From positions 186,001 through 250,000 of the forward strand of contig DF236975.1 in NCBI GenBank assembly GCA_000708835.1: a stretch of DNA of 64,000 nucleotides, in the 5' to 3' direction. Under the pieces are notes generated by a model. That model was not told where the DNA came from and searched no databases. It was given only the letters and a program-made list of their open reading frames with translations. The stretch comes from Klebsormidium nitens (lineage: Eukaryota; Plantae; Klebsormidiophyceae). Both the position numbers and the translations under genes were made by a program. Positions within the stretch are counted from its first letter, which is position 1, and each line of letters opens with the position of its first letter. Below are positions 4,748 to 56,400 of the stretch, in pieces.

Positions 4748-6142
4748 CTACCAACACTTGCAATTCTGCTAGACTTGCCCAAATCTGCAAAGGCCAAACA
4801 AATGCTCACAATGTCACATGCATTGTCATGATATCAAAAGCAAAGGCCCAGGGCCACAGCGCACCTCTCCGCCAGCTAAAAGATGCTTGAATGCTACAGG
4901 CTACAGGGTCTGTTGAAAACTTGTTTTTGCAGATTGAAACCCTAATTCGCAACTTTTCCTGAGCTGTCTCCGACCCGATCCCCAAACCCTGAACCCTGCC
5001 AATGCGCATATATGATGCGCGCCGCGTTGCGGGCGGCCGGGCGGCTAGCTAGCTAGATCGAGATGCATCATTCAATCATGCGCATTGGATACTTGTGTGT
5101 GCCTACTAAATGAAGGCTGTTTTTTCGCGCGACATTCCTCGTTAAAACGTCATGAGCAAGTGTGAGCAAGCAAAGAATGGCGACCGGCGTCTAAGTACCG
5201 AGCAGGACTGTGTTCGAAGGCTCATGATGGATCGCTTGCTTTGAGGTTGCTTTGGCGAAATTTCTCCCTGCCAGCCAATGGCAGGTTATAAATTGACAGA
5301 CGCAGAATAGGAGGTCCGCAAATCTGCAAAGTATCTGTAGCCTTTTTTGCCGACTCCGCTGATCCGGGGGTCTTTGGAGTATTTCCGTTTGGCTACTAAA
5401 CGTCATCGTCCAGCAGTCCGGAAAGACTCTCATCAAGGTTGCCAATGCCGCATCGACGCGACGGCGCTGGAAGCTGTAGCAATTACTCCAGAATGGTCAG
5501 GCTTTGTCAATCGACCTTCTTTCGTCGAGACACTAAGTCAGTTGAAGCCCGCTGTAGTTCGTTTTAACTATCATTCTAGAGTTTCGAGCTTTGTGTATGT
5601 TGAGTTGCAGGATCGGGATGAATCAGAAAACGCGGCAAGATCTGTCGCGTGCGTTAAGCAGCTTTTAAGGTACAGATCATTTCTGGGGGCGTTGAAAAGG
5701 ACGCGGTCTGCATTGAAAATGATGCGTTATCAGCAATGAGAACCATCTCGTTTTTCGTGCACGATATGTTGTAGCAAAGAAGGGAGCTTGTGTATCGTTT
5801 TAAGGCTCCGCTCCATGTAATTTACAACGTGCTGAACGCCTACTTTGAAGCAGAGTCTACAATGGGGAAAACCTTCCCTCTTTTTCCTGCTTGCAGTTGT
5901 CTTCTACAGTTTAGAGCCTGCTTAGGGTGCATCATGTCGTAATTTTATACTAGGGAAAGGCTCAATTGACTTTGTGAGTCTGCATCCAACAGCCTCGTTT
6001 TCAACAACCCGTTTAATTCAGATCCACGGGACCCGCAGATCCAATTAGATACAATTTCTTTTCCATTAGATGGAACTCGTAATGAAAAAGATGAATACGC
6101 AAATAGCTTTGCATATAAAAGGTTTTTGCTATAAGAAAAAGT

Positions 6143-7172: not shown

Positions 7173-10100
7173 ATGATGAAGTCTAGCGTGCTGCCCTCGG
7201 TTCTCTGCATAGCCGGCTCGCTCTTATTCCTCACGCGTTACGCCTCTGAGGTCGAGCACTGGAGTCCTTCGAACGCATATTCAAAGGGCCTGAGTTTCAG
7301 AAAGCGTTTCCAGCATGAGATCGTCAAAAAAACCAAGCTGCCCCAACTTGCTGCAAAGACAGAATCAGCACAAGTTGTGTTCCGAGACTGGAATGCAGAG
7401 CAGATAGACAGTCGTATAGAAGACGACAGGCCAAGACCACATATTATCATTCCGCCGACCGACAGCTCTGGAAAAGTTGCACGTGGAAACTTGGCTCTAG
7501 ATGGGCTCGGTCCGGGACGTTCGCAGGCTGCTGGAGCCAAGAACATAAGCAGGTGAGGATCCAACTTTTCCTTTGTGCTTGAGATGAGAGAATGTTTACA
7601 TGAAGTCTCTAAGGGCGGTGACTGCTTGCAAGAGATTGGAGCTCCCTGATTAAATGCGGAGATCTTATTTAAAAATAGCTCTGTGAGGGCGCTGACTGAT
7701 CAGAAGAGAAGCTGTGGTGCTTTAAGATTTGGCCCGGCCGATCATGCAAACAGGCGCAACTGTGAGGGGCAAAGATTTAAAATCTGCAAGACTGGCCCTT
7801 GCGCACATAACCTGCTGCCCAGCCAGACCAATCTTCCTGGAATAAACACTTGGACTTTAATCTACACCAGCTAAGACTTCCACTTTGTGATTCAAAAGCA
7901 GTTCATCTGATCCAGAAAATACCCACTCTCGTTCAGTTTGAAGGCTCCAAGCCCCTACATTCATAAGCAATGATGATATGCTCTTCTGCAGCCGAGGTTT
8001 TGAAGAGCTTCCGCTTTGTCCACGCTGCGTTGGTGCTGTCAAGTCAGACCAAAGCAAGACCAGCCGTTAAGAAAGTAGCGCTTTCATTGGCACTTGACGA
8101 TGAACCATTAATGGCACACGCTTATGACAAACCAGTTGCTCGAACGATTGATATCTCCCAACGCTCCAATCTCCCCTCTTTTCAAAAGCGACGAGAGATA
8201 CACTATCAGCTCATGCGGATTTCATCTTAGTTTTCCGTGACTGCTGTTCCTAACATGCAGCTGTCGCCCCGACCAGCTCGTATACATATACGATCTGTCC
8301 CCGGAGTTCAACGTGGCGACAGTCACTACCGACTGCGCGACAAACCGGTTTTGGGCGGTGCACCCCCGAAACGCGTGCCAGATCTACTCCCCCGAGCACT
8401 GGGGAATAGGACCTCCCCTTAAGGACGAGAAGTTTGCGGAACTGGGCAGTGATCCTCAGATGTGGGCTGATACTGGACAACACGCTCTTGAAGTCATGTT
8501 CCATCAGGTGACGCTTGCGAAGTCCTCTTTCGAAAGAAACACCGATATAAAGATCGATATAACGACCTTATGAACACCAGTGTTTCGATGTGAGGCCGCT
8601 CGCAGTAGGTCGTTCTGGGACCGTGATCTACCAATTTTGCTTCGCGTTCCCGTCTTTGGAAAGTTGAAGCAGATTGTAGCCTCGTTTCGTGCTCCTTAAA
8701 AAGTCCAACCAGTACTCCGTCGGAGCAGAAACCGGTCAATAGCTCCAGAAATTGAAGCAAAGATGCCCCGGAAACTCTTGTACTCTGGCTTACCCCTATA
8801 TCTACGTTTGCACACTCAAAAATCTACCGGATCTTCACTTCTATCTACATCACTTTAAACAGCACTCGTTCAACTAAAATGACGGACTAAAACGACCGCT
8901 TCGTCATTTGCAGTACATGACGAATCTCTACCCCTGTCGAACGCACGACTCGGAAGCGGCAGCCGCTTTCTACGTTCCTCTGTACACGGGCATACTGTGG
9001 CAAATCCATTCGGCGCAATGTGCGACCAACAACTGCCCACAGCCGTCACCGTTACTAGGTCTCGGAAATAGACTCGAGGAAACGCTCAAGCGTATGCCGT
9101 ACCTAGAAAGGTAGGTTGACAAAGAGATTCGAACCAGCGCGATCGCTCGAGTTCTGCTTGGCCGTGCATGAGATGTCCGCAACGAGTCGCCGTCGCTTTC
9201 TCACTGTTTGGTCCGACTCCTTCTCAAGGAGACGAATCGCCTCTGTGGGGCGCACCAAAATCTGACGACTCAGCACCGGACTCTGTCGTTCCCGCTACAG
9301 CTTTATCTGGTTCCGAGTTGGGCGTCAAAGAAAACCGCAGGCTGGGCTCTCGTGCGTCAGTATCCGGTCCAAGTTCTTGCTCCATCTCACTTCCTCACAG
9401 TGTTCACGTGGTCGATATCTGCTGCGTACCTCGTGAGGACCTACCATGCGCTTCCGTTTTGTTTGGCCGGATCCAAGACGTGTGCTTTCGATCTTGACCC
9501 ACCCGTTCTTTAAACGCGTTTGAGTGCTCTACCGCATCCAAATCAGGATATTCGAAAACGTGCTTCACGTTCTGACGAGTTCGTCGCAGCACGCACTTGC
9601 AGCTGAATCTGGCGTTACTTCTGCAGGAATGAAGGCCGAGACCACTTCACGACGATGGGTTACGTAACTGACCTTGCCGTCGAAGACTTCACCTGCTGCA
9701 AATCCAAGTTACTGAACATGGCCTACACGAGAGCCATGACGTTACTTGGCATAGAGCCTGCGTATGCACACGAAGAGCGCCAAGTGAGCCTTTCAGGTTC
9801 ACTAAATCCGTTCTTAGCCCATCTCCAGTGCTTCGCCGCTTGTAATATGTATTCGAGCTTTTAAAAGTTTCTTGTTTGCACTTCATTCCAACCATTGCTA
9901 AATAAGTTTTTTCGATGACACCGGGGCAATCGAGCGGATGCAAATGAACGGGCTTCGACTTTCTGGAGAAAAGCGAGAATGTCAAGAGGTTCAGTCGATC
10001 TTTTCTGCACGCAAACGAGTGAAAAGCTTGCGGGTTCTGCAAAGCGTGTCCTAAGTTGCTCTCAAAGTACGCGGAAGCTTTGATAGGTTGACGAAGTAGG

Positions 10101-11525
10101 TCCCTACTCCTGTTTGCGCATGAAAGTTTGATTGAGAGCCACGCTTTGATCTATCTTCGGTCTTCCACATTCCACTACCGGGCTAAAATTGTTCAACATC
10201 CAGTTGAATGCTGATGCATCCAAGATGGACGTGCTCAAAATATTATCGAATTTTTTGGGGTTCTAGGAAGGGGTGTTCTCAAGAAAGGTACGCCCGAGAC
10301 CCTCTAATAAAACCTTCCAGCGCCTTTCTTGTTATAACCTTGTCCTCAAGAAAACAGCTGCTGGCGGCGAAAGCTTTGCCCAATCAAACTCCTACTCTTC
10401 TGTATCAGGTCAGCATCCCCTACCCCACCAGCTTCCACCCCGTGTCTCTGTCCGACATAGCCGCCCACCAAACTCTCGTCGCCTCTTCCCACCGTCCGAT
10501 CTTCGTCAGCTTCGCTGGATCGTTCAAACGACCGGGCCTCCACTCCGGCCGCGCCCTGCGCGGTGCGCTCCAGGAGCATTGCGCGCGCGCGCCCGACTTC
10601 TGCCACGTGGCGGCCTGTGAGAATGTGTGCGGCGCCGCGGAGAGCTTCGAGCTATATCTACGGTCGACGTTCTGTTTGCAACCGCCGGGGGACTCGCCAA
10701 CCCGCCGAGGCGTCTTTGATGCGCTACAGGTGAGCGCGTAATGCACAGGTTTTGGCTGCTAACCAGGCTGATAATCAGATTTGAATCCTAGGTTATTGGG
10801 CAAAAAACAGGGCTTCAAATTTGTTCTAAAGCTGGGTACATTCCAAATCTATTTGTTGAACATATAACCACTTTTTAAGCAGCCGGTAAGCAGGCCTTAA
10901 CTGTCCATGGTGAAAGGCCAGAACCTCCAGTGCAATGCGCACAAATATTTATTCAACCAGGCACAAGGGGAGTCAGTCTTGACTAAGACCAATCAGGCTT
11001 GGGTGAAGGATATCGTTCAGACGCCTGTCTACTCGAGCATATTTACAACAAGCTCGGGTCGAAAGCGCAGAACCTTGTGTTTCCAGCTTGCGGTTTTAAG
11101 GATGATCAGCCACGTTTTCTCCCCTTTCAAACGTGCAGGCGGGCTGCATTCCCGTCATCTTCCAACCCAAAACCATCAACCCATACGCCCACTTTTTGCG
11201 GCCCGACTGGGGCCGATACTCAGTGTTCGTTCCAGAAGATGACGTCATCAACGGGGCAACGGACGTCATCGAGTTTCTAAGGAACGTGTCCGATGTCGAA
11301 ATCGAAGCCAAACGCAAGCGTATAGTGAAAGTGCTGCCCCGGATTGTGTATAGAAACGTTGCGCGGACCCTGCTTGGGAAAATGGACGTGGCAGGTTCTG
11401 ACTACCAGGGACCAGTTATTGGGTGGACAGGCGCGTACGAAGTTGCAATCGATGCCGCTTTGGAAAAGATCCGCGACAGAATGCAGACACGTAATGCGAG
11501 TAATGCGGCTACTGAGACTGTTTGA
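7173..11525 (+). CDS. Exostosin-family (GT47) glycosyltransferase, MUR3/KATAMARI (GT47-A)-like type II membrane protein
   Basis: Exons 7173-7552, 8261-8507, 8914-9110, 9627-9783, 10409-10729 and 11139-11525 are in frame. There is an N-terminal hydrophobic anchor, and motifs VYIYDLSPEFN, QHALEVMFH, FYVPLY, EGRDHF, SIPYPTSFHP and [28 protein letters not shown]. Confidence 0.93.
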
Positions 11526-47965: not shown

Positions 47966-49956
47966 TTACTACTTTTCTACAAGCTACCAAACTTTGCTGT
48001 ACTTGCTTGCTTGTTTGCTAAACCTGGCTGCTCTGTTTTCCCTTAATCTTAAAAGCAACCTCCACGACTTTGATAGACCGACACTGTTGACGGACACTCT
48101 GTTGATCGAATCTAATAAAGTCGAGCACGATGTGTCCTGCACTTACCGCACAACACTTCCCTACCAGACGTGCCCCCGGTAAATTTGTCACATGTAGCAC
48201 TAACTAGCAGTGGGGTTAGAAATGAGGGGAGAGAAAAGGGGGTAATGGTACCTGTTACAGATGAGGACAACAGAGAGACAAAGAGGGGTTGAGGGGTCAG
48301 CTGGCAGTCCGCCCTTTCAGTAGGCTTGTTGCTATGAATACACACAATAATCTAGACGAATAAGCTAGCAGCCACCACCTGCAAAAGCTTTCACGAAGAT
48401 GCAAGCAGAGGAAGGTCAGTGTTCAAGCTATCCGTTCAAGTAAGCAACCATTAATTGCAGTGAATTCCTGCAGGCAAGAACAACAGAGCTGAAAACATAT
48501 ACATGGAGAACAGTCAACTGTTCCTGAATGCTGAGCAATGAGCAAGTGAGAGTGGTCACACGAGAAAAGAGAGCAATGGTCAGTATCAATACCGTGAGAT
48601 AACGTCCAGAACACGGAGCAGCTTTTGAAAGCGGGAGTCGACGCTGCTGCCCCAAAACATTCCCCAGATGGATGCAAATGAACAGACTTGCGCTGACTGA
48701 GGCGCCAATGCCAAACCCCTTGAAGCTGCCCGTGCATTGAAAATGGATAGCGCCCTTCAGGTCGCTGCTTTCCTGTGAGATTCGAGTAGGTAGCCCGAGA
48801 CCTGCGAGGTCTGCCAACAGTGACATCCTCAATCAGCAGACTAGGTAACTTTGCTAGTCTAGAAAATACGTCATCGATGACATCAGCGATACCGGTGGTA
48901 CGGTACGGTACTTTTAGGATGTGGTCGGTACCGTCTGGTTCAACCGGGTGCGGTAGGTGCTCGGGGCAATTGCGGGTTACAAACAGGGATAACACTGATC
49001 TTGGTGGGGTTAGCTGGGGGGTTAGGGTGGGTACGGGTGGGCTCTGGCGGAACGCCTTAGGGTTTGCTCAATGCTTACCCTTATGGTCTTAGTGTGTGTT
49101 AGGGCGTTAACCCTGTGTGACATCATCAGTGACGCAAATAGTAAGACTAGCAAACTTACGTACCCACGTCTCCTCAAGAGTCAATAGCCAACTTCATACT
49201 TCAATTGTCCGTCGACAATGAGAGAATCCATGTTGCTCGATCAGATGTCCCGAGGCCGCTGGAACTTAGTTGAGCTTACAGGTTAAATAAGTGGTTAAAC
49301 CACCACCCGCGGTATAAATACTCCTGGGTGTCAGGATTGCCAAAGTCAAGTTTCGGAACTTGAAATTTCGCGATGGCGCATGTATACGAGAAATGCCAAG
49401 ACCACCCTCAAAATGAGTCATTTTGCATCGTTTCGAACGGCGGTTTCGATCTGACCTTGCTTGGATGACTGCACCTGAGCTATGCGAAGTGAAACCGCCG
49501 AAAAAGTCGAAGAAATGCGTCTGTTTTGCCCTTGAATACGGTCAATTTTGATGGGATTCAGATCGTGCGCCCTCGACCGAAATTCGTATTCCGGTGACCG
49601 TTGGCGAGACTCCCGACCACTTCGGCCGATTAAATACCGCGGGTGGTGGAACCTGATTGAAAGTTTCCACTCTTCACTTCGATATACAAATTTGCCGTTC
49701 CACAGATCCAATTGGGGCCTTGACGAGGGGGTTTGCTTGGGGCCCCGAGGAGACTAAATGATAAATCTGCATTCTGGGGTGCTTTCTAAAACAAGCCATG
49801 ATGGTCGCAGAACGTGGACCCAATTCTGTCTGTGTTCACTGTTGAATGCCAAAGTGCTTGAAATTGCAGGCCCTTGCCAAGGTGGTGTCTTCAGGAGATT
49901 GTTTTCAGATGAGCAACTTTCTGGCTGGATCAGGCGCCAAGAATTCAAGGTGTTGA

Positions 49957-50256
49957 ATGGATGTGGCGTTTAGATCAGCAGAGACGCTCTCTAGACAGTT
50001 TCCAAAGTGTGCAAGACTGATCAGAGCGCTCGACGATTGCAACCGGAAACACCGCAACCACGTCGAGCAGGGGATCGTCTGCAGGCAGCTGAACCACAGC
50101 GTTGCAGAGTGCCTGCTGAAGATTGTCTGTGGGCCGGAGCTTGAGCGTGTGACAGATCTTTGCGGTTCGCAAGGAACCAAGGCCAAAAAGAGGCAGTGTG
50201 CGGATGCGAAATGTGAGCTAGAGGAGTGCATTCGCCGCAATCAAGAGGCTGGGTAG
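49957..50256 (+). CDS. Small intronless CX9C-type (CHCH-like) cysteine protein, 99 aa
   Basis: Four regularly spaced Cys pairs: CARLIRALDDC (CX9C), CRQLNHSVAEC (CX9C), CGPELERVTDLC (CX10C) and CADAKCELEEC (CX9C). There is an ATG start and TAG stop. The pattern resembles helical-hairpin disulfide proteins. Confidence 0.75.
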   Translation: MDVAFRSAETLSRQFPKCARLIRALDDCNRKHRNHVEQGIVCRQLNHSVAECLLKIVCGPELERVTDLCGSQGTKAKKRQCADAKCELEECIRRNQEAG

Positions 50257-50409
50257 TCCATTATGCAGTTAAAGACGACCAAGCATAGTGCCCTTTGATT
50301 AGTCCTCAACATGAAATTTCAGTCAATGAGGAACCAGCATTAGTGGCGGGATCGCATGATTGTCTGATCTAAGGATGGTATGCCATTCCATTGACAGCCC
50401 TCCCCAACA

Positions 50410-53400
50410 ATGACTTCACCTCTACTGCAACGAGCAGGTAGCTCGTTGAGTTCTGGTGGTTACAACTCCCCAAAAAGCCTCCAGCGCTATGGCAGCACTG
50501 CCCTTGGCCGGAGGGCCTCCATCTCAGAGTCTCCCAGGGCAGGATCGTCGGGTTCGCTTGTGGAGAAACCCGCACAGGCACAGGTGAGAAATACAATGCC
50601 TGAATTCCACTTTGAGACTGACCTTGAAACTTTGACATTTGCAGATTTCCACCACCCTTGACTACGTTGTGCACAAACATTCTGGAGGTTGGTTGACAAT
50701 ATGCGCGTTTGAAATTGCATGCCCAGACCTGTTTGCATTGGTGACACCCTTTATCCACGCTGACTCCACTCAGATGCGCAAAAGTCCAATCATGAGGCAT
50801 CTGACGAGTAGGCTGCTACACAATTGCTGAAGTTCCTTCCTCTGACGCATCGATGTGCCCCAACAATTGTCAATCCTCTCATGGTCCTCAAATCTCTGCA
50901 AACCACTCTTTCTGTCCCTTAGGGGAGATCTCGCTCCTCATCTGTGGCCCCTGCTTCACCACTTTGTATGCCCCTTTGCGCAGACCTCACTTGAGGACAT
51001 CAAGAAGGACGAGACGTTTGCCAAGTTCCTGGAGGATGAGTTCAACGCCACCGACTTTGCGAGCCAGGCGCTGCACAGCGGGAGCGCCGCCAGCAGTTCC
51101 CGTAAGCTGCAGGAGGGGATCCTGCTGCTGGAGAAGCAGCTGCGGACCGAGGTGGTGAACCGGCACGATGAGTTGCTGGCGCAGGTAAGGGAAATCGTGG
51201 GAGACAGTTTAGGGCGAGGAGGGGGGCAAACAGTCTGCACGTCTGATTAAGCTGTACAGTTCTGATCAAGATTGTACAGGCCTGATTAACACACAGACGT
51301 GGGGCTTGAAGAGGACCACTGCTATTGCAGCTGAGGGCTTCATTGCTCTGTTCCTGCATATGGAGCAACGGTGAACAACTTCTTGTACAGAAAGAGATGA
51401 TCGATCATCATCGCTGGATGATGGTATCGCCATGGAAAATTTGACCATATCAGCTGTCCCATCTGAATGGTCAGTGAAAGTTCACATACCTTTGGACACT
51501 TGATGATAGCGTCAATGAAATTAATCAACCACCATCACTACCTGCTGCCGCAGGACGAAAGAGCTCGTTTAACACAAGGTTGTAGTATTACTGAAATTTG
51601 TGCTTGCATAACGCTCTTGACGTGACAAGCCGCCGTGCAATATTGCGTGCCCAACGCATCACCGTTTTTTAAGCATTACATGCCCCAAAATCCTGGCCCA
51701 TCTGAAAAGACCATCTAGCGGGTGTCTGTCCTATGTGATAGTTGCAATTTTTGACTGTCCTTTGCCTTCGTAGGTTCTTTTCGCTCTTCCTCCTGGTCAT
51801 GAGCTCGGCTGGGATTTTGATGAAGACCTTGAGGCCCATCAGAAACGATAGACAAGGAATCCGTTGGTGCCATGCAGAAACGCTTTACCTGATCCTTGAA
51901 CACTCCTCATCCTTGTCTATCTCCAGGTATCTAGTCTCAAGGACACTGAGAACGTCCTAGCCGTCGTCCGCGCCGAGGTGGAGTCCCTACGCTCCAGCGT
52001 CCAACGCGTCCGAAACGAGATCGCGGACCCGTACAAGCAGATCAAGCTGAAGACGCGCCAGCTGGCAGCCTTACACGGCACCGTCGAGCTTCTCCGGTAC
52101 GTGATCCGGGTGCTGAAACTGACGGGGAAACTGCGGGAGCAAGTCGAGAGCAAGAGCGGGAGGCTCGACTTGGCGAAGGCTGCGCAGCTGTACAGTGAGA
52201 TTGACGGGATAAGGAAAGAGGCGGATCTGGGGGGATTGGAGGCAGTGGAAGCCGAGATGGGGTGGCTGTCGGAAGTGAGCCAGAGGATCCGGACGGAGGC
52301 GATGAAGAGCCTGGAGGCGGGGATGGAGTCACTGAACCAGGTACGGAGAGTCGCAACTCAAAAATGTCCCTAGAACTTCTGCGTTTGGTCGATGCAAGAC
52401 TTTGGGTTGCTCTTTTCGGGAGTTGTTGGTTGAATGCTGTTTCGTTTTCCATCTTAGATTGTTGAGGCCGACTTTGACCACTTATAACGATTGAAGTTAG
52501 TTCGTCCTTGAGCAACCCGCTCCTGATCGATCGTAATGCTTCCGATTAAAGAAAATTTGCACGTAAGCGCAGACAAGTCTGTTGACTCCTCCGTAATGGT
52601 CAGAAACACCTTTTACGCTCTCTCATTTTGTCGTTTTGGAGCAACCTCTAACCCCCAAACCCCTGGACCCCTCGCATCTTCGAATCCTTGTAACTCCGGA
52701 GCCGCTTAAGCACTGCTCCTTGCCTCAACTCTACCGCTCTTGAAAGCCGAATTCTATTGGAGTACGTATCTTGGACGGTTCGATCAATAAATGGGCCGAT
52801 TCAGTGGTCTAAGATCAGGCACCGAAGGTTGAGACTCAAGGGGGCTGGTGGCCCGTCTTGAGACCGGAGAGCTGATACATGTCCCTTACCCCGGCGCAGG
52901 CGGAGGTGGGCAGCGTCCTCCAGGTCTACTACAACATGGGCGAGCTGCGCCAAACGGTGGAACAGCTGATGGGCAAATACCGGGTCCAGCTAACCAAGGC
53001 CATCTCCGCCGCGCTCGACATGAAGGCCATCTCCGCGGACCAGAGAGCGGCCCCCGGCCCAGGGGGGGTGGCCCGTGCAGGGACGCCGGGCCTAGGGACG
53101 GCCCCCAAGGCCAGGGAGGCGCTCTGGCAGAGGATGACGTCATGCTTCGAGGCGGTGCACGGGGTCATGGTGGCCGTATGGCACTTGCAGGTGGGGATTC
53201 AATGCAGTGACTATCGTGCGAAGTGTCGTGTCGGTCCCGTTGATGGAGTCTGGTGGGCCTTCTATCATGGTCAGCTTTGCGTTCTTGCTTTGAGTCCCTG
53301 CTTGATCACGTTGTTTTGCAGTCGCGTCGAAAATACTGCCGAAAAGCAGTTCCCGGTAGAACATATACCACAAATTGCGTTGCAATCATCGAATCCCCTG

Positions 53401-56400
53401 TCAGCAGACTCTTTCCGTCCTCCTCTTTCTCTTCTACGCTCGTCCAGATCCACAGGCTGATGCCTCACACAAAAACAGTGATTGATACGCAACGATCAGA
53501 CCAAATCCCATGCGACTCTCCTCTGCAGCGCGTTTTGGCCAAGAAACGCGACCCCATCACCCACGTGTGCTTCCTCACGGAGGCCGTCCCCGAGGGGGAT
53601 CCCCGGCCGACCGAGCGCATGTGGGAGTCGTTCACGAAAGTCCTGGCCAACCAGATGAAGAGCGCGTTCTCCGCGTCTAGTTTCTGCAAGGAGACCTTCG
53701 TCAACGGGTACCCCAAGCTGGCCGGCATGCTCGACGCGCTCCTCGAGCGGCTCGCAAGGGACACTGACGTCAAGGTGACGTCACTACGATTGCCCTTCTT
53801 GAATTTGTGCTTAATGATTCTCTTGCCCGTCATGGAGTATATCTTCCAGCGGTTGTTCATGTGGAAACTTCTGTTCCCTCGCTCGATTAATCCTTCCTCC
53901 AGTCTGCTTCGGTGCAGCAATTCCATTGTGGAGCTTCAATGGATTTGCCACTTTGCGTTGCTACGACATCTGGTAAAGATTCGGTCCCGTTCTAATTAAC
54001 ATTCGCTTCTACCATTGAAAACCACAATCAAACCATGCTTGGATGCAGGGCGTTTCGTCAGTCCGCAAATCTAACAATATGTTCAGTTTGCTGCTCATTG
54101 TGTGCCTCAAAACTAAAACCTTGAGGATTATGCTCACGTTGAACCTGCGAGCTCGCACCAAACGGCAGAGCGTTGCGCTGCTATGAAGCTCAACCACAAG
54201 ACACGCCACCTCTTGGCGGTAATCGAGCTAGGAACGACACACTCTTTGGGGCAAGCAATCTGCTTTTCGAACCTTCGATTCCCTTTTCAAAGCATCACTC
54301 TGCTTTCTCGGCTTTCCAACCTGATTGTCGATGCTCGATTCGGTGCAGGGCGTTGCGCCGGCTGTGAAGCCCGAGGACAAGGCGAGTTTGTCATTGGCAG
54401 TGGAGCCGTTCCAGAACGCGTACCTGGCGCAGTCGCTTAAGCGAATGCAAGAGGCGGTTAACACCCTGTTTCCGCAGGGGATGCGCGCCAGCATACCCAA
54501 CTCCGACCAGGTCGGTTAACTTGCGAGTCAGAGGGCGGGTCATAGTGCGGGGTTGATCACTTTGACTCGGCGCAGAATGGTTGACGCGTGTAGAGGCCAT
54601 GTAGCCGACTATGACCGTCACAGCCGACGTTGCATGGATTCAATCTGCCAAATCTAGCGCTAGAGGTGCCAGCAGATAATTGGGAACGCACGACTCGCTG
54701 TGCTAATGTTTCTATCTCTTCCACTGCACGTTGTACTCAGGGTTTGCGTCTAAGTCGGCCTCCTTCAGTGTTGCTGCCCGAAAGCTTCATCGTTTTGGAG
54801 TAGTCTCTCGGTCGGTGTTTCTGATGAATCGATGCTCACAGCTGTTCACTTAATCCTGCCGGGCTTTACTGATTTTCGAAGAACGTTATCCTCTCTCCTG
54901 TAATGCTTTCACTTCGTGCTTCAACGTCATCGCTTATAGCTGCATCTTGACAGTCACAATTTTCAAGAAGGCGAAGCAGTCCCGCTGGATGACTTCCAAA
55001 GCCGACTGCATAGGAGACACAATCACCAGCAAAACGTAGCTCGTGAGCATTCGAAGGTTTCAGAACAAAGCGAACCGTTAATCAACCATCTCTTCTTTCT
55101 TCAGATGTCTCGCCTCGCCTCTGGGCTGTTGGAGGAGCTGGGGGCCGTGCAGCCAGACCCCACTTTGACGGGCCTTGTCATGCGGGGCGTCGGAACTGCG
55201 CTGCAGCTTTTGGCTGAGCGGGCCGAGTACCAGGTCGCGACAGGGCCCGACGCGCGCCAGGTCACGGGGCCCGCGACTGCAGCCCAGCTGCGCAACTTTG
55301 CCATCTGTCATCATCTACAGGTAAGAATGGCGTAGCCTTCTGCGGGCGCCCTCAAACCATTCAAGGAGAGCTTGATGTGAGCAGACTCTCATGAGAGTTT
55401 GAACCTTCAATACATTTCCGTAAGTCCAGTTCGCGAGCGCTTCTTGATTCGTTCCGGGTTTGTTCGGGTCTTCTGGTGAGGAGAGTGTGAGGTACTCGTT
55501 TCACAAATGACATCTTTTGAAGTGGTTGGAAAGACGCTTTCGAACTGCTTTGCAAATACAGGAGGTTCTGGGACGCACACGATGCTGAACGTCGCTGGCT
55601 CTCACCCCCTTTGTAGGTCTGCATGCCAAGCTGGCGGCTTTGCTCACAGTATATGCTCGAACCCCTCCCTTCGTGCCCCGGGGCCTGTGTCTGTGCTGAC
55701 GTCACATTCCCCCAATCCGTTCACTGGAGCTGCACGCCGAGCTGGCGGCGGACACATTCGCACTCTTCTCCGTGTTCCTTGGTTTCAAATCTGTCCTGAC
55801 GTCATATGCTGACGTCTGACGTCAGCTCCCCCTCCCCGGCTGCAGGAGCTGCACGCCAAGCTGGCGGCGGCGATCCCCGCGCTCCCCTCCCTATGTCTTC
55901 ACCTTCTTCTGCCCTGACGCCATATGCTGAAGTCTGACGTCACCACCGCCCCCGACTGCAGGAGCTGCACGCCAAGGTGGCGGCGTCGATTTCCGCTCTC
56001 CCATCCGTAATCCTTGATCATCAATCTGTCTTGACGTCATATGCTGACGGCTGACGTCACCAATTCCCCCGTCTGCAGGAGCTGCACGCCAAGCTGGCGG
56101 CGGCGATCCCCGCGCTCCCGTCCGCGGCCACCCAGGCCGCGCTGGGCGCCGCCCTGGGGGCCATTCACACCGTGGCCTCGGAGGCGGTAACACCGCTCTT
56201 CCGGGCGATGGTTGAGCGCATCGAGGCGCTTTTGCTGCAAATCCACGACCAGGCGTGGGGCGCCGATGTGCTGGCGGATGACGTCGGCGGCGCGCCGGCG
56301 AACTGCAGCAGGTACATGGAGGAGGTCGAGCGCGCGGTGCTGCACTTCCGACAAGAGTTCCTGTCCAAACTGCTGGTAAGGATCAGCAATGATGGACTTC

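Follow-up and report, generated by a model that had tools for sequence, protein, structure and literature searches.

Does a small cysteine-rich protein share a single messenger RNA (mRNA) with a Golgi-tethering subunit in a streptophyte alga? This question is raised by a 64,000-nucleotide (nt) stretch of Klebsormidium nitens DNA (assembly GCA_000708835.1, contig DF236975.1, positions 186,001 to 250,000 of the forward strand), called the window here, in which an open reading frame (ORF) of 99 amino acids (aa), ORF1, lies just upstream of the COG5 gene on the same strand. An original prediction had described an ORF with four CX9C/CX10C cysteine pairs that ends at 50256, a COG5 ATG at 50410 and a gap of 153 nt between the two, all of which we confirmed. 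It had further proposed that one mRNA may encode both proteins. Taking together RNA contigs, close relatives of the locus and the protein family of ORF1, we consider it probable, with moderate confidence, that ORF1 and COG5 form one transcription unit whose spliced bicistronic mRNA is the only mRNA for the Cmc1-like ORF1 product. The features of the locus are listed below with positions in the window; UTR and uORF denote untranslated region and upstream ORF.

49683 to 49690, plus strand: TATA-like box TATACAAA, about 30 to 36 nt upstream of the contig 5′ ends; putative promoter element, judged by its sequence.
49719 to 49956, plus strand: 5′ leader of 238 nt with five AUGs (observed/expected ratio [O/E] 1.12), delimited by contig ends.
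49957 to 50256, plus strand: ORF1, intronless, encoding a Cmc1-like double-CHCH protein with eight conserved Cys (Pfam, substitution rates, homologues and AlphaFold2 model); start context tgaATGg (T at −3).
50257 to 50409, plus strand: inter-ORF spacer of 153 nt with six AUGs, subjected to AUG counts and to fold and Rfam scans.
50375 to 50413, plus strand: uORF of 12 codons in the strong context aggATGg, with a TGA that overlaps the COG5 ATG (ATGA); a role in reinitiation is conjectural.
50410 to 50583, plus strand: COG5 exon 1, 58 codons; start context acaATGa (A at −3), the ATG being conserved in relatives L002 and L001.
50584 to 50983, plus strand: COG5 intron 1, 400 nt, GT..AG, spliced out in RNA contigs.
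50984 to 51184, plus strand: COG5 exon 2, coding for COG5_N (RNA contigs, Pfam).
51927 to 52340, plus strand: COG5 exon 3, coding for the end of COG5_N and the start of COG5_C (RNA contigs, Pfam).
52900 to 53190, plus strand: COG5 exon 4 (RNA contigs); the same contig resumes at 53529 and runs further.

The RNA data consisted of assembled contigs, not reads, from four runs (X1, X14, X2 and X15, belonging to four studies) placed on positions 48200 to 53800. The records of these runs leave their type unstated, and we took them as RNA because the introns and the intergenic region 49135 to 49695 have no depth. Sampled words of the region 49750 to 50600 were present at 92 to 95% in 19 runs of seven studies. 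Each of the four runs placed on the locus yielded a single contig of 3384 to 3447 nt, starting at 49719, 49719, 49723 and 49724, i.e., with 5′ ends within 5 nt of each other. The contig is unbroken from there to 50583, through the leader, ORF1, the spacer and COG5 exon 1, and is then spliced at 50584 to 50983, 51185 to 51926, 52341 to 52899 and 53191 to 53528. Between 49883 and 50443 the summed depth equals that of this one contig in all four runs, and no competing contig, branch or loose poly(A) end was found there. Mean word depth was 41 to 151, with a similar form of the contig in all runs examined. From these data we infer that both ORFs lie on one RNA molecule.

The identity of the downstream gene was established by searching its exons one by one. 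Exon 2 matched Pfam COG5_N (3.2e-9), and exon 3 matched COG5_N (1.6e-12) and the start of COG5_C (5.6e-5, just below the cut-off for that fragment). The COG5 exons of both relatives carry COG5_N and COG5_C, and the start codon at 50410 is found at the same place in the two. The four COG5 introns covered by the contig placement are all bounded by GT..AG, and exons 1 to 4 are in phase 0.

An in-frame TGA immediately precedes the ATG of the 300-nt ORF1, and the RNA contigs are colinear with the genome from 49719 to 50583, showing that ORF1 is intronless. Its cysteines are arranged in the pairs C18-x9-C28, C42-x9-C52, C58-x10-C69 and C81-x9-C91. A word search returned two close relatives that each have a 99-aa ORF1, L002 with 91% and L001 with 73% protein identity. 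All eight paired cysteines are retained in both, and the ninth, C86, is an unpaired extra that is missing from the two and not conserved. Comparison with L002 gave a nonsynonymous rate (dN) of 0.045 and a synonymous rate (dS) of 0.59, hence a dN/dS of 0.075. Nucleotide identity between the window and L002 was 88% in ORF1, 67% in the spacer, 52% in COG5 intron 1 and 43% in the leader. With respect to L001, synonymous sites are saturated, with the protein still 73% identical.

A profile search of 1.84 billion cluster representatives yielded 43 homologues that cover all four Cys pairs. Those with names include streptophyte proteins (Chara braunii GBG62057.1, Marchantia polymorpha Mp1g13400, Ceratopteris and many angiosperms) and trebouxiophyte proteins (Myrmecia bisecta, Stichococcus and Botryococcus). 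They are labeled "COX assembly mitochondrial protein" in UniRef and, for some, "Cmc1-like" at NCBI. The nearest named relatives of ORF1 are those of streptophytes, and ORF1 has the streptophyte motif without the chlorophyte insertion. In an alignment of 26 family members, four cysteines (C28, C52, C58 and C81) never vary, and three more (C18, C42 and C91) hardly do. Pfam Cmc1 (PF08583) matched ORF1 over its first CHCH, residues 13 to 55, at 25.5 bits (curated cut-off 22, E 1.4e-5), and among the 26 members it matched 15, with Pet191_N matching 9 and the CHCHD5-type CX9C family 8. AlphaFold2 run on the family alignment predicted two helical hairpins (residues 15 to 57 and 58 to 99) with a predicted local distance difference test score of 89.6.

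Searches beyond the family were less informative. A structural search (VIA-align wide) gave Z scores of 5.5 to 6.2, with CHCH subunits of complex I and of mitoribosomes among the top rows beside generic helical hairpins, a result that does not discriminate between them. A profile search of the PDB with the ORF1 family gave a weak CHCHD5 match (2lql, E 0.064), a direct PDB sequence search with ORF1 returned chance opsin matches only, and Foldseek of the ORF1 model against the PDB returned nothing at an E of 0.001 or below. Two metagenome scans for more ORF1 relatives with flanks found none, and the assembly index has no entry for the exact ORF1 protein. We found no characterized member of this plant subfamily in the literature. 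Arabidopsis CMC1 is listed as AT5G16060 (PMC5877523); the word-limited family search returned no Arabidopsis entry with which the ORF1 family could be equated.

As judged by its sequence, ORF1 is a real, conserved protein-coding gene of a Viridiplantae-wide family, and the predicted CHCH-like CX9C protein holds up: the Cmc1 threshold is passed, purifying selection is evident in the dN/dS value, and homologues are numerous. Purifying selection on COG5 as well as on ORF1 gives indirect support to the translation of both. In our reading, the ORF1 product is a double-CHCH protein that resembles Cmc1/Cmc2 in its first half. The likeness to Cmc1 (CMC1) and Cmc2 (CMC2) lies in the Pfam match over the first CHCH and in the predicted helical hairpins; these proteins have two Cys pairs, whereas ORF1 has four in 99 residues, the third being CX10C. 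The second CHCH is weakly similar to the double-CHCH proteins CHCHD5/Mic14, through the 2lql match and through the family members that match the Pfam CX9C and Pet191_N families. By analogy with its family, the ORF1 protein most likely undergoes oxidative folding in the mitochondrial intermembrane space, and its family name would suggest MIA40-dependent import and a role in complex IV assembly.

The arrangement of the two genes is shared by both close relatives. ORF1 occupies positions 470 to 769 of L002, with the COG5 ATG at 928 on the same strand and a spacer of 158 nt, and positions 8001 to 8300 of L001, with the COG5 ATG at 8510, again on the same strand, and a spacer of 209 nt. The L001 spacer cannot be aligned with that of the window, yet it is still short, giving a range of 153 to 209 nt over three genomes.

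Several observations weigh against a bicistronic mRNA. Transcripts that share 31 nt are merged by the assembler, and a two-gene contig therefore shows neither a single molecule nor its ends nor exclusivity; the single spliced contig found in four studies partly supports one mRNA for both ORFs. The leader defined by the contigs is not short and has its five AUGs inside, although the main transcription start site may lie nearer ORF1. Fifteen AUGs precede the COG5 ATG (O/E 1.24), which is no depletion, and the six in the spacer exceed the 2.4 expected (O/E 2.5, P about 0.02). Depletion is also lacking in L002 (O/E 1.01), and the count is low only in L001 (0.46, P about 0.05). The neighboring 5′ UTR of SF1 (splicing factor 1) is AUG-poor, with 3 AUGs for 8.3 expected, unlike the ORF1/COG5 leader; ordinary leaders here therefore seem to be depleted of AUGs. 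The spacer RNA has an unremarkable fold (z −0.54), so no special structure, and Rfam gave a sub-threshold chance match only; an IRES-like (internal ribosome entry site-like) or other structured RNA in the spacer was rejected on these two results. A scan for bacterial-type promoters and terminators was uninformative for a eukaryote.

The pairing also fails to extend beyond the close relatives. Up to a distance of 10 kb, the orthologues of Marchantia (L003/L004) and Chara (L005) have no COG5 near them; the gene is also absent from a shorter land-plant contig that carries the orthologue (L006) and from the surroundings of the orthologues of Myrmecia bisecta (L007), L008 and L009. The orthologue is a stand-alone gene in Marchantia, Chara and Myrmecia bisecta. 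Adjacency in other streptophytes, which the original prediction had named as a test, was thus found in L002 and L001 but not in Marchantia, Chara or the land plant of L006. Deep conservation of the pairing is rejected, and because it is absent outside the clade of the window, L002 and L001, the arrangement appears from these sequences to be specific to a Klebsormidium-like lineage, not ancient.

Other gene neighborhoods were noted around the orthologues. On L008 (GC content 38%; positions 4972 to 6118), a gap of 57 nt separates the orthologous Cmc1-like ORF, 89 aa long, from a downstream ORF of the same strand that opens into a gene for YjeF_N (NAD(P)H-hydrate epimerase), whose next exon matches Pfam YjeF_N (6.8e-9). 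Here, as judged from a DNA contig, the small ORF may be tightly paired with another partner, different from COG5. On L006 (7206 to 8450), a land-plant contig that also bears a PPR E-motif gene, a Rieske-domain ORF precedes the orthologue on the same strand at a distance of 157 nt as called, or of about 310 nt if translation starts at the Met aligned with other family members. The Chara braunii gene model GBG62057.1 covers 13 kb of BFEA01000025.1 (L005; 10001 to 23227). The whole region homologous to ORF1 (residues 12 to 97) lies there in a single block, 10154 to 10417, and the long extent of the model may be an annotation artifact.

How would a ribosome reach COG5 on a shared mRNA? In the scheme that we propose, transcription would start at about 49715 to 49720, downstream of the TATA-like box, and yield a spliced mRNA of about 3.4 kb composed of the 238-nt leader, ORF1 without a poly(A) site of its own, the 153-nt spacer and the multi-exon COG5 ORF. 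The −3 position is T at ORF1 and A at COG5 in the window, L002 and L001, contexts that would be weak and strong, respectively, although the consensus of the organism itself may differ. The weak context of ORF1, found in three species, would let some scanning ribosomes through, and these would reach the COG5 AUG after skipping, or reinitiating behind, very short uORFs. All spacer uORFs are indeed very short (3 to 12 codons), and the last would end in an AUGA overlap with the COG5 start. An 11- to 12-codon uORF with the same ATGA ending occurs in L002 (893 to 931) and L001 (8478 to 8513); this conservation is only suggestive, as by a rough estimate chance would produce such an ending in about one of four independent lineages. 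Some COG5 may in addition be made from a shorter isoform that begins at an internal start site and carries COG5 alone.

The likely options for translation are therefore leaky scanning past ORF1 combined with reinitiation after short uORFs, or an extra COG5-only isoform. Pure leaky scanning to COG5 is doubtful because of the 15 AUGs that precede it. The original suggestion of leaky scanning or reinitiation is weakened by these AUGs, and by their excess in the spacer. We infer the translation route, as we do the localization of the products, and see no evident functional link between the ORF1 protein and COG5, as at most published algal bicistrons. A stricter version, in which the mRNA is exclusively bicistronic and ribosomes that have leaked past the ORF1 AUG, or have translated ORF1 to its end, reach COG5 through a cascade of short uORFs and AUGA reinitiation, unlike the leaky scanning of chlorophytes, strikes us as unlikely. 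If it were true, COG5 output would be tunable in a GCN4-like manner, and streptophyte algae would run bicistrons without AUG depletion.

In the leader, the sequence TGTTGAATG is repeated in frame at 49840 and 49951, 111 nt apart, and for this reason a uORF at 49798 to 49845, another at 49846 to 49956 and ORF1 itself are three consecutive in-frame ORFs split solely by TGA-ATG junctions. The tgaATG ahead of ORF1 is kept in L001, and L002 has tggATG.

The most serious alternative is that ORF1 and COG5 are two monocistronic genes with overlapping transcripts that de Bruijn assembly has merged, the poly(A) site of ORF1 lying in or past the spacer and the COG5 promoter inside ORF1 or the spacer. We regard this as possible but less than likely. 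The RNA evidence consists of contigs, which such overlap would suffice to produce; the AUG-rich spacer resembles a 3′ UTR or a promoter more than a scanned leader; and the family member is a stand-alone gene in other plants. The greater conservation of the spacer relative to intron 1 and the leader in L002 might also be that of a core promoter or poly(A) region. However, 153 nt would have to accommodate the 3′ UTR and cleavage site of one gene as well as the core promoter and 5′ UTR of the next, and the four runs show no second contig, branch or loose poly(A) end between 49883 and 50443. Over three genomes the spacer length remains between 153 and 209 nt, despite a sequence in L001 that cannot be aligned, and the weak/strong pair of start contexts is conserved. 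No TATA-like box or canonical poly(A) hexamer occurs inside ORF1 or the spacer, and none of AATAAA, ATTAAA and TGTAA is found from 50257 to 50409; the absence of canonical hexamers is weak evidence, as they may not be the poly(A) signals of this organism.

ORF1 might instead act mainly as a long regulatory uORF that throttles COG5, in the manner of a conserved peptide uORF (CPuORF), with its protein incidental. It sits in the contig-defined COG5 leader, and the many other upstream AUGs around it would jointly repress COG5. Strong selection on the protein (dN/dS 0.075) and retention of all eight cysteines argue otherwise. The family also has genes of its own, apart from COG5, in Marchantia, Chara and Myrmecia bisecta and is widely annotated in angiosperms, which is not what defines a CPuORF. 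The Pfam match above threshold and the confident two-hairpin fold are likewise the profile of a working trans-acting protein, and we hold this explanation to be very unlikely. Still less credible, to the point of being barely tenable, is that the long RNA is a minor read-through by-product normally cleared by nonsense-mediated decay (NMD), with separate functional mRNAs. In Arabidopsis, NMD is reported to suppress polycistronic RNAs that arise by read-through (PMC9768141), and an ORF1 stop codon far upstream of many exon junctions should attract NMD. Such a by-product is hard to reconcile with a contig of similar form and depth in each examined run of the four studies, with no competing contigs, and with the lack of intergenic splicing. 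A single bicistronic transcription unit thus remains the reading that we prefer.

The upstream intergenic region, which had been placed at about 49100 to 49750 and divergent from SF1, is about right in extent: it is RNA-silent from 49135 to 49695. The 5′ UTR of SF1, at 47966 to 48806 on the minus strand, contains a 337-nt intron (48253 to 48589, GT..AG), and the divergent SF1 contigs end at about 48806, reaching weakly out to 49079. Positions 48941 to 49079 are covered by low-depth contigs in run X15 alone, one of which has four base differences (T>C, G>A, A>C and T>C); these contigs may stem from a strain variant or from rare SF1 transcripts whose 5′ end lies farther out. The silent region between SF1 and ORF1 also holds a perfect 16-nt inverted repeat, CCACCACCCGCGGTAT and ATACCGCGGGTGGTGG, at 49300 to 49315 and 49634 to 49649 with 318 nt between the arms, which looks like the terminal inverted repeats of a small insertion resembling a miniature inverted-repeat transposable element (MITE).

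In chlorophytes, there is ample evidence for polycistronic mRNAs of nuclear genes (Gallaher et al. 2021, PMC7896298; Duenas et al. 2025, PMC11892635). The published signature of green-algal bicistrons is an ORF 1, a spacer and a 5′ UTR that are all short (medians of 291 to 357 nt, 40 to 183 nt and 54 to 83 nt, respectively), together with a weak start context at ORF 1 and a depletion of AUGs ahead of ORF 2 (PMC11892635). Their partners are often small mitochondrial assembly-type proteins, examples in Auxenochlorella being COA4-like, COA6, two "cysteine alpha-hairpin" proteins and a Cmc1-like ORF 1 (CMC2/COAC1) (PMC11892635). The locus studied here shares with these bicistrons two complete, non-overlapping ORFs on the same strand, an ORF1 of 300 nt and a spacer of 153 nt that are within or near the medians, and a weaker context at ORF 1 than at ORF 2. 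Colinearity is kept in relatives (here L002 and L001), the products have unrelated functions and compartments, and ORF 1 encodes a small protein of the mitochondrial assembly type. It differs in belonging to a streptophyte, in its lack of AUG depletion before ORF 2 and in its long, AUG-rich leader. Moreover, the chlorophyte cases rest on Iso-Seq, proteomics and reporter tests, whereas ORF1-COG5 is known from contigs and sequence.

A close precedent is CMC2/COAC1 of Auxenochlorella protothecoides, which is colinear in several trebouxiophytes and in Chlamydomonas (Dataset S2/S5, PMC11892635). There too, ORF 1 encodes a CX9C protein of the Cmc1 family (about 90 aa), and ORF 2 encodes an unrelated enzyme of the cytosol or another compartment. 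The partner is phosphopantothenoylcysteine decarboxylase instead of COG5, however, the spacer is 2 nt long with no AUGs before ORF 2, and ORF1 of the window, with its second CHCH pair, is a member of another subfamily. In Myrmecia bisecta, the one trebouxiophyte examined, the orthologue stands alone with no flavoprotein neighbor, and for this species we rejected an identity of the ORF1 subfamily with the published ORF 1 of CMC2/COAC1. Among streptophytes, CDC26-TTM3 is cited as a conserved land-plant bicistronic transcript (PMC11892635). It resembles ORF1-COG5 as a streptophyte nuclear mRNA with a small conserved ORF upstream of a larger, unrelated one, but it is deeply conserved across plants and chlorophytes, whereas ORF1-COG5 is confined to a Klebsormidium-like clade.

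COG5 is absent from the text of PMC7896298 and PMC11892635 and from the examined supplements of the latter, and our literature searches turned up no account of polycistronic mRNAs from nuclear genes of Klebsormidium or streptophyte algae. The claim that this locus is the best candidate for an undescribed system in the window was nevertheless overstated, as bicistrons with a small mitochondrial ORF 1, including CMC2/COAC1, are already published (PMC7896298, PMC11892635). The general phenomenon being known, the locus is supportive rather than surprising, and it is the gene pair that is new. If confirmed, the Cmc1-like/COG5 pair would join the nuclear bicistrons of the green lineage, in a streptophyte alga that is a close algal relative of land plants. 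Lacking AUG depletion, the locus would provide a useful test of the chlorophyte leaky-scanning model in streptophytes. A conserved and probably unannotated protein of the respiratory-chain assembly type would be hidden in the leader of another gene, which matters for the annotation of this and related genomes.

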